Positions 60,007 to 61,299 of a DNA stretch of 64,000 nt are shown one piece after another. Source of the DNA: Chara braunii (taxonomy: Eukaryota; Plantae; Charophyceae); assembly GCA_003427395.1 (NCBI GenBank), contig BFEA01000001.1:11403787-11467786 (forward strand), read 5' to 3'. The translations under genes and the position numbers were made by a program. Each line of letters starts with the position of its first letter. Positions within the stretch are counted from its first letter, which is position 1. Under the pieces are notes generated by a model. That model saw only the letters and a program-made list of their open reading frames with translations, made no database searches and had not been told where the DNA came from.

Positions 60007-60804
60007 TAGTGAAGGTCCGACGAGACGAAGGAGGGACATTGTTCGAGCTCGATGGATCGACCAACAGGGGGCACGTAAACTTCGTAAAGTAGCGGGGCCC
60101 GGATCTCTTCCCCTTCGAGTACTTCTTCGCCTCCTGCTGAAAGAAAGGAAAGGACTCGTCTGACACGTGGTTCAACGAGAGGTGGGCAGGTTTTAGCTGT
60201 ACAGCGCTGGTGCCCAGGACCGCTGTCCGGCAGGTCCGCTGGAATGATGGTTTTCGGTGTTCCTGGCGGAGTAGTGGGTGCGCGATAGAGAAAATGAATG
60301 CTGAGGTAGGGAGGGAGGGGCCTCGTGAGCTCATCAAGAAACGCAAGGGCATTAGCCCTCGGGCTCCACGAGGATGTTAAGGTCCTACCTAGGAAAGCGA
60401 GTAGTGGGAGAAGGATAGTGGTTGGGCTCTTGTGAGCCGTTCGATTCGTCGCTTCTCCATTCCGGAGAGTGTTCTGGGTGACCGTGACCGTCGGCTGATC
60501 GGGACCGGGATCGACATGGGGGTTGGGCGGTCTACACTGTCTGAGAGACTGGGCAGGGTCGGGATCAACACCTGGCCTTGGGCGATCTTCACCTCAGATG
60601 GACGTCACAGCCGGGATAGTCGCCGTCAGAACGCTACCCACACAGTCGATAGAGATGGTGATCTGGATCGTGACTGGCCGTCGGAGGTCATGCAACAGCC
60701 ATCAGATCCGGATGGAACCCTTTTTTCTTTTTTTTTTCACCAAAACAACCTGCTTCCCCGCCCCTGGGACCATTTCTCTACTTACGCGTGGGATCAGACC
60801 GCAG

Positions 60805-60968
60805 GGGCCAAGTCCCACTAGCAGCGTTGAGCTACCTCAACGCCTGAATCTGGACGTGTTTGTGGAGACATGCAGTTCAGGAAACTCAACACCATTTCTG
60901 CACATCTCCACAAAAGCGTCCAGATTCAGGCGTTGAGGTAGCTCAACGCTGCTAGTGGGACTTGGCCC
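60805..60968. mobile_element. Harbinger-like MITE, TSD CAG, inserted in U6
   Basis: Near-perfect ~52-bp TIRs GGGCCAAGTCCCACTAGCAGCGTTGAGCTACCTCAACGCCTGAATCTGGACG, with CAG on both sides. Confidence 0.9.
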
Positions 60969-61023
60969 CAGCGGTCATGCTCATCTTCTCTGTATTATCT
61001 CTCGAATTTTAACGGATGTCCCG

Positions 61024-61221
61024 GGGCCAAATCCCACTACCAGCGTTGAGCTACCTCAACGCCTGAATCTGGACGCTTTTGCGGCGATGTGCAGAACAAC
61101 GCCTGAATCTGGACGTGTTTGTGGAGACGTGCAGTTCAGGAAACTCAACACCATTTCTGCACATCGCCGCAAAAGAATTCAGGCGTTGAGGTAGCTCAAC
61201 TCTGCTAGTGGGACTTGGCCC
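61024..61221. mobile_element. Harbinger-like MITE, TSD CCG, inserted in the U6 5' stem-loop
   Basis: Same TIRs, with an internal duplication of AACGCCTGAATCTGGACG and CCG on both sides. Confidence 0.9.
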
Positions 61222-61299
61222 CCGGAACGACAAAACCAACCGATTTAAGATTTGATCCCCCACCCCCCCCAAAAAAAAGATTTGATCCTGATGCAGATG

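Follow-up and report, generated by a model that had tools for sequence, protein, structure and literature searches.

The window, a stretch of 64,000 nucleotides of Chara braunii DNA, contains a decayed copy of U6 that is interrupted by two short fold-back transposons, MITE1 and MITE2, of a single family. The family appears to be a Harbinger-type MITE with CNG target duplications, nested here in a dead U6 copy that is probably a retrocopy. The best reading of the locus, and a reasonably probable one, is that chance led one element to a palindromic CNG target in this U6 copy and that a sister element re-inserted close by. The parts of the locus are as follows.

60767-61231, minus strand: decayed U6 copy, interrupted, with two fold-back MITEs inside
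60767..60804, minus strand: 3' part of U6 (approximately U6 positions 56-93; blastn E 1.3e-5, nhmmer E 7e-4, colinear reconstruction)
60805..60968, unstranded: MITE1, a 164-bp fold-back with GGGCCAAGTCCCACT ends; CAG at 60802-60804 and 60969-71
60969..61023, minus strand: middle part of U6 (approximately positions 7-58; Rfam U6 26.3 bits over model positions 1-63, blastn E 4.8e-11)
61024..61221, unstranded: MITE2, 198 bp, of the MITE1 subfamily; CCG at 61021-23 and 61222-24
61222..61231, minus strand: right CCG copy and the first 7 nt of U6 (reconstruction)
60721..60737, minus strand: A-rich tail (a plus-strand T run), 29 nt downstream of the interrupted U6 (sequence reading)

The left copy of the CAG duplication (60802-60804) ends the 3' part of U6, the middle part runs from the right CAG copy (60969-71) to the left CCG copy (61021-23), and the 5' end of U6 lies at 61231. 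When each MITE is deleted together with one copy of its 3-bp duplication, the reconstructed sequence is colinear, without rearrangement, with positions 1-93 of the consensus-like U6 copy of the window (48579-48679), to which it is 83% identical (77 matches, 16 mismatches and 4 gap columns). On its own, the middle fragment scores below the gathering cut-off of Rfam RF00026 (26.3 versus 44 bits); the interrupted copy is identified as a dead U6 by its 83% colinear alignment with a copy that reaches 96.9 bits. The trinucleotide duplicated by MITE1, CTG on the U6 strand, immediately precedes GCGCAA in the region of the internal stem-loop, while that duplicated by MITE2, CGG on the U6 strand, lies in the U6 5' stem-loop. 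An earlier note on this DNA had described two MITEs with terminal inverted repeats (TIRs) and different duplications, CAG and CCG, in one U6 copy. It was correct to the base, and the reconstruction matches the two stem-loop regions in which it had placed the insertion points.

The A-rich tail 29 nt past the interrupted U6 suggests that this copy arose by LINE-type retroposition and may be chimeric. No flanking duplication was recognisable for it at the locus; as read from its sequence, the copy is probably a retrocopy.

The locus also gives sub-threshold Rfam hits to MIR5387 (45.3 bits), MIR8001 and mir-153, which were rejected as they represent MITE hairpins and the two facing MITE arms instead. 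The MIR5387 hit (60934-61059, plus strand; cut-off 69 bits, E 1.7e-6) arises from the facing arms of MITE1 and MITE2, which span the U6 piece. This grass miRNA family may itself be MITE-derived, with similar ends. Adjoining the locus, a tRNA-like head, then about 100 nt and a long A run (61290-61477, plus strand), have a SINE-like appearance; ARAGORN calls no tRNA there. A separate fold-back at 59899-60009, with 48-nt arms that are 92% complementary and a sub-threshold mir-1902 hit, is probably another MITE family.

Two further relatives of the interrupting elements are present in the window.

53132..53291, unstranded: MITE3, an older copy in non-U6 DNA; CGG at 53129-31 and 53292-94
48760..48932, unstranded: diverged older relative, 55-60% identity (nhmmer E 1.6e-7; arms 84% complementary)

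Members of the family begin with GGGCCAAGTCCCACT at the left and end with its reverse complement at the right; the left end of MITE2 reads GGGCCAAATCCCACT. Nine occurrences of the 16-nt end motif with at most two mismatches were counted in the window, against 0.08 expected. The elements measure 160-198 bp, are without coding capacity, and are complementary to approximately 70-79 nt from their ends. In MITE1, the terminal 70 nt at either end are 94.3% complementary to each other; between arms, complementarity is 94-95% in MITE1 and MITE2 and 83% in MITE3. Folded as single-stranded DNA, MITE1 reaches -88.4 kcal/mol (z -20), compared with -22 for shuffled sequences. MITE1 and MITE2, which stand 54 bases apart in the same orientation, share 94.9% identity, and of 154 aligned columns, 2 are changed in MITE1 only and 5 in MITE2 only; the alignments show that MITE2 is the MITE1 sequence with 40 bp duplicated internally and 6 bp deleted. 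MITE3 is more distant, with 80% identity to MITE1, 78% to MITE2, and 28 private changes of its own. Perfect 3-bp direct repeats (CAG, CCG and CGG) adjoin the ends in three of the three complete copies, and the relative at 48760-48932 has no clear target duplication. Comparison of a 28-nt MITE end with metagenome contigs gave no match.

Placing the ends of MITE1 8 nt further out, where the inverted repeat reaches 60797/60976, was considered and rejected: the other copies are without those bases, and no duplication flanks them. The 8-nt extension of the inverted repeat is the palindromic target of the element. Elsewhere, the GC-rich stretch 48455-48495 contains a MITE-end-like GGGC/TTGGCCC pair adjoining two copies of CCCCTGCG, which is the U6 motif at the MITE1 site. 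This pair might be a footprint, a remnant or a product of chance.

Because of the 3-bp duplication, the ends starting with GGGCC, and the small non-coding body, the family looks like a PIF/Harbinger-type MITE. The earlier note had called it Harbinger-like; the TIRs and 3-bp duplications are borne out, and from these we infer the superfamily. Autonomous PIF/Harbinger elements encode a DDE transposase (DDE_Tnp_4) and a Myb/SANT-like protein. A Pfam scan of 30 of the 56 window ORFs of at least 130 aa, from which ORFs crossing N gaps were left out, returned hits only to RVT_1 and zf-RVT and none to a transposase, and no autonomous partner with the same ends was found in the window. The TWA duplication usual for the superfamily is absent from the complete copies, all of which show CNG. 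Single ends of related TIR families occur at 48166 (GGGCTAGGTCCCACT), 49655 (GGGCCAGATCCCACT) and 59175 (GGGCAAGCCCCACT), flanked by CAG, TTA and CCG, respectively; the wider TIR group uses both CNG and TWA sites. The statement that the clear duplications are all CNG thus stands for the complete copies and fails for the wider group, in which the single end at 49655 has TTA. Zebrafish Harbinger3_DR integrates into the palindromic sequence AAACACCWGGTCTTT with a CWG centre (PMC3016246), so CNG duplications are no novelty for the superfamily. In our analysis, TWA is best regarded as the usual, not the defining, duplication of PIF/Harbinger elements.

The interrupted copy is accompanied by other U6 and snRNA sequences.

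48579..48679, minus strand: consensus-like, uninterrupted U6 copy (Rfam U6 96.9 bits)
52722..52760, minus strand: U6 fragment, 5' 35-39 nt, 97% identical to the consensus-like copy (blastn, nhmmer, alignment)
45705..45780, plus strand: fourth U6 copy, strongly decayed, 75% identity over positions 31-92 (nhmmer E 0.022; alignment)
46829-47004, plus strand: U2-like sequence (Rfam 40.5 bits, cut-off 46)

Four U6 copies were thus identified by blastn, nhmmer and alignment, all at 45.7-61.2 kb. Three had been counted before; the one at 45705-45780, recovered by nhmmer and alignment, raises that number and carries a GA-repeat expansion inside its ACAGAGA region. The U2-like sequence is probably a decayed U2 retrocopy. 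The U6 density amounts to four copies in 16 kb, all of which, together with the U2-like copy, fall within 45.5-62 kb, and dead U6 copies make up approximately 2% of their 14-kb stretch.

The copy at 48579-48679, the only one in the window above the Rfam cut-off, had been taken for a full U6. A perfect 14-nt direct repeat, TCTGTGCTATTTTG, brackets it at 48574-48587 and 48680-48693 and, on the U6 strand, opens with an A run. A target duplication beside an A run is a mark of LINE-type retroposition. Plant U6 promoters lie upstream of the gene and consist of an upstream sequence element (USE) and a TATA box (PMC9845283). No plant snRNA USE was found within 90 bp upstream of this copy. The 14-nt direct repeat and the absence of a plant-type upstream element in that interval indicate that it is a young retrocopy, not a gene. 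A TATA-like run stands approximately 15-20 nt upstream of it, apparently by chance.

A broken LINE with RVT_1 and zf-RVT pieces (35832-42394, plus strand) is a candidate source of the machinery that produced the snRNA retrocopies. A word search with its reverse transcriptase ORF against proteins of 163-520 aa retrieved one unrelated hit of 28% and no close kin; longer kin may exist. The window also holds a trypsin-like gene at 44309, of which the first exon was read.

The host U6 has diverged by 17%, MITE1 and MITE2 by 1-3%. Since the arms of the two MITEs are 94-95% complementary, compared with 83% identity for the U6, the target was already old when it was struck, and most of its changes predate the insertions. 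At the other two sites, the order is the reverse. The distances given earlier, approximately 80 bp (from the element at 48760 to the U6 at 48679) and approximately 370 bp, are accurate, the latter being exactly 372 bp (53132 to 52760). The arms of these two elements are 84% and 83% complementary, whereas the adjacent U6 sequences are approximately 100% and 97% identical, and the 48579 copy has its own duplication; it follows that U6 came later beside both the 48760 element and MITE3. Old MITEs beside young U6 retrocopies have the wrong time order for the association that had been read into their proximity. At the local U6 density, moreover, chance alone would give a MITE3-U6 distance of 372 bp in roughly one case in four (by arithmetic). 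The flanks of MITE3 have no similarity to U6 (nhmmer, even at E 10), and a U6 flank is absent at the single ends 48166, 49655 and 59175. The clean CGG duplication of MITE3 in non-U6 DNA and the single ends without a U6 flank exclude strict specificity for U6.

How surprising are two hits in one U6 copy? If insertion points are uniform and at least 2 of 3-4 family insertions are required to fall inside U6, P is 1.3e-4 for the whole window and 1.5e-3 to 2.7e-3 for 45.5-62 kb alone, values that come from a single locus, chosen after the fact from approximately 970 windows, with sister hits 54 bp apart. For at least one hit in U6, P is 2-9%, which is unremarkable for a case picked post hoc from approximately 970 scanned windows. 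The two U6 hits are not independent draws, since MITE1 and MITE2 are young sisters (94.9% identical) 54 bp apart, with MITE3 at 80%. Their sequences suggest a single hit with a subsequent re-insertion nearby, or two products of one burst. The insertions had been called independent: as separate events, with different sites and duplications, they are so; as independent draws, they are not. There is also an ascertainment bias, because U6 is known at sight, and a pair of MITEs 54 bp apart in anonymous DNA would go unflagged. Given the sister relationship, the time order and MITE3, the window offers no good evidence for the association of the family with U6 or Pol III loci that the earlier note had proposed.

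The empty target of MITE1, GACCG-CAG-CGGTC, is a perfect 13-nt palindrome with 5-bp arms. Perfect palindromes with 5-bp arms occur at 2 of the 3006 CNG sites in the MITE-free window (63469 nt), and the MITE1 target is one of them. Consensus U6 is not palindromic at this position; the palindrome arose through decay of the U6 copy, and MITE1 occupies its centre. A palindromic CNG target such as those of known Harbingers explains the MITE1 site without reference to U6, provided that the changes in U6 came first; the ages suggest this, without proving it. The arms of the MITE2 target are complementary over 2 bp and those of the MITE3 target not at all, so with three targets a palindromic-target rule is weak. 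CNG density is not raised in U6, with 4 sites in approximately 95 nt (manual count) versus 3006 in 63469 nt.

Taken together, the sequence of events that we consider reasonably probable is as follows. A U6 copy, most likely a LINE-made retrocopy and promoter-less, would have decayed to approximately 83% identity. One young subfamily of a non-autonomous PIF/Harbinger-type fold-back transposon would then have struck it twice, recently, moved in trans by a transposase presumably encoded elsewhere in the genome, with 3-bp CNG duplications at each insertion. The first insertion would have occurred at a short palindromic CNG site, the kind of target that Harbinger transposases choose. The second, near-identical sister would have inserted 54 bp away, either by re-insertion near the donor or as part of the same burst. 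Re-insertion some 50 bp from the donor is assumed here; we know of no documented case of it in the PIF/Harbinger superfamily. That U6 was the host would reflect the abundance of dead U6 copies in the genome and in this stretch, not recognition of U6 or of Pol III loci.

A real sequence preference of the family for U6 is unlikely, though it is the most probable of the other explanations. It holds that the invariant GGCCCCTG, which reads CAG+GGGCC on the other strand, resembles a duplication joined to a transposon end. If the transposase tends to insert beside ends of its own kind, it would be drawn to U6, and dead copies would provide a safe multicopy landing pad. The two hits in one 95-nt U6 copy are nominally improbable (1e-4 to 3e-3), which speaks for such a preference. 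At the exact MITE1 site, moreover, consensus U6 on the MITE strand reads CAG followed by GGGCCA, that is, the duplication and then the terminal repeat's first six bases; among shuffled U6 sequences, only 0.15% contain a match of the CNG+GGGCCA type. The 8-mers CNGGGGCC and GGCCCCNG are found 11 times in the window, six times as MITE ends and once in an intact U6. The U6 copy actually struck by MITE1, however, reads CGGTCA, not GGGCCA, at the position of the mimic, and the age gap (17% versus 1-3%) suggests that it already did so at insertion. The MITE2 site (CGG, in the 5' stem) is unlike an element end, the two best-preserved U6 copies are unoccupied, even though one of them (48579) has an intact mimic, and neither MITE3 nor any of the single ends is situated in U6.

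In its boldest form, the same idea would state that a charophyte PIF/Harbinger lineage prefers U6 because the invariant GGCCCCUG mimics its own end plus a CNG duplication, with dead retrocopies serving as a harmless landing pad. This claim we regard as quite improbable. Target-specific DNA transposons are rare, and Dada is, to our knowledge, the only superfamily known to target small-RNA genes. If true, the claim would make the family the first snRNA-directed member of the Harbinger superfamily and would mean that DNA transposons had evolved U6 targeting a second time, independently, and at Dada's own motif. Taken at face value, the locus is an ordinary nested-repeat locus in a genome in which MITEs and dead snRNA copies abound, and it matters only if the U6 preference is true genome-wide; in that case, a Harbinger whose target rule is short and readable would interest both transposon biologists and developers of targeted integration tools. 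The window supplies a testable rule, in which CAG+GGGCC in U6 equals duplication plus element end, together with a competing rule, the palindromic CNG target, and a warning about the time order of cases "near U6".

Targeting directed by structure or by Pol III, either to hairpin-forming DNA or through a tether to factors of U6 and other Pol III genes, is very improbable. Tethering to Pol III-gene factors is the strategy of Ty3 and of the Dictyostelium TRE elements. Both insertion points here lie in parts of U6 that form RNA stem-loops, and the MITE1 target is a perfect palindrome; stems of 4-5 bp, however, are too short for extrusion in DNA, the MITE3 site is not palindromic, and a palindromic target follows more simply from a symmetric transposase dimer, as in known Harbingers. 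At 60805-60830 and at the remaining MITE ends, the terminal repeat includes GTCCCAC, which is identical to the core of RTCCCACATCG, the upstream element of plant snRNA genes (PMC9845283), and would fit a link to Pol III genes; no TATA-like box stands at promoter distance after it, and the match is treated in this analysis as a coincidence to be tested, not counted as evidence. The U6 copies are retrocopies or fragments without a USE and TATA box, at which no Pol III complex is expected, and ARAGORN finds no tRNA gene in the window. That a composite MITE-U6-MITE block was moved or copied as one, or that the locus is an assembly artefact, is scarcely credible. In its favour, the MITEs share their orientation and are almost identical in sequence, and the window has several N gaps. 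Against it, one U6 sequence carries on in colinear order beyond both MITEs, which contradicts a composite unit; each MITE has its own perfect duplication while the outer pair (CAG/CCG) is mismatched; the locus is free of N, with the nearest gap ending at 58751; and the window contains the block only once.

Among known elements, Harbinger3_DR and Harbinger3N_DR of zebrafish (PIF/Harbinger superfamily) offer a close parallel to the family, with TIRs, a CWG-centred 3-bp duplication, a palindromic target and non-autonomous copies moved in trans. The Chara family differs from them in its duplications (CAG, CCG and CGG, which is CNG and wider than CWG), in its G+C-rich flanks, and in showing a clear palindrome at only one of three targets. 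With the Tourist and mPing-type MITEs of land plants, it shares a short, non-autonomous fold-back structure, ends that start with GGSC and a 3-bp duplication. Those elements duplicate TWA, whereas the complete Chara copies have CNG and one related single end (49655) has TTA. The U6 sequences themselves resemble the LINE-mediated U6 retro-pseudogenes made by mammalian L1, both in the 14-nt target duplication by an A run at the 48579 copy and in the 29 nt and A-rich tail that follow the interrupted copy. This likeness concerns the host U6 alone and has no bearing on the mechanism of the MITEs.

Dada-U6 elements have no TIRs, generate 6-7-bp duplications and occur almost only in their target gene (Kojima and Jurka 2013, PMC3706591). 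As DNA transposons inside U6, the Chara MITEs are similar to them, and the MITE1 duplication (CTG) abuts the Dada duplication GCGCAA within CCCCTGCG, a motif shared by Dada targets (PMC3706591). Membership in Dada was nevertheless rejected, since the family departs from both of its defining features, having long inverted repeats and a 3-bp duplication. In target-specific transposons, furthermore, nearly all copies occupy one fixed site of the target gene, whereas the Chara elements entered U6 at two different sites, and MITE3, the 48760 relative and the three single ends lie in non-U6 DNA. Dada also belongs to another transposase superfamily.
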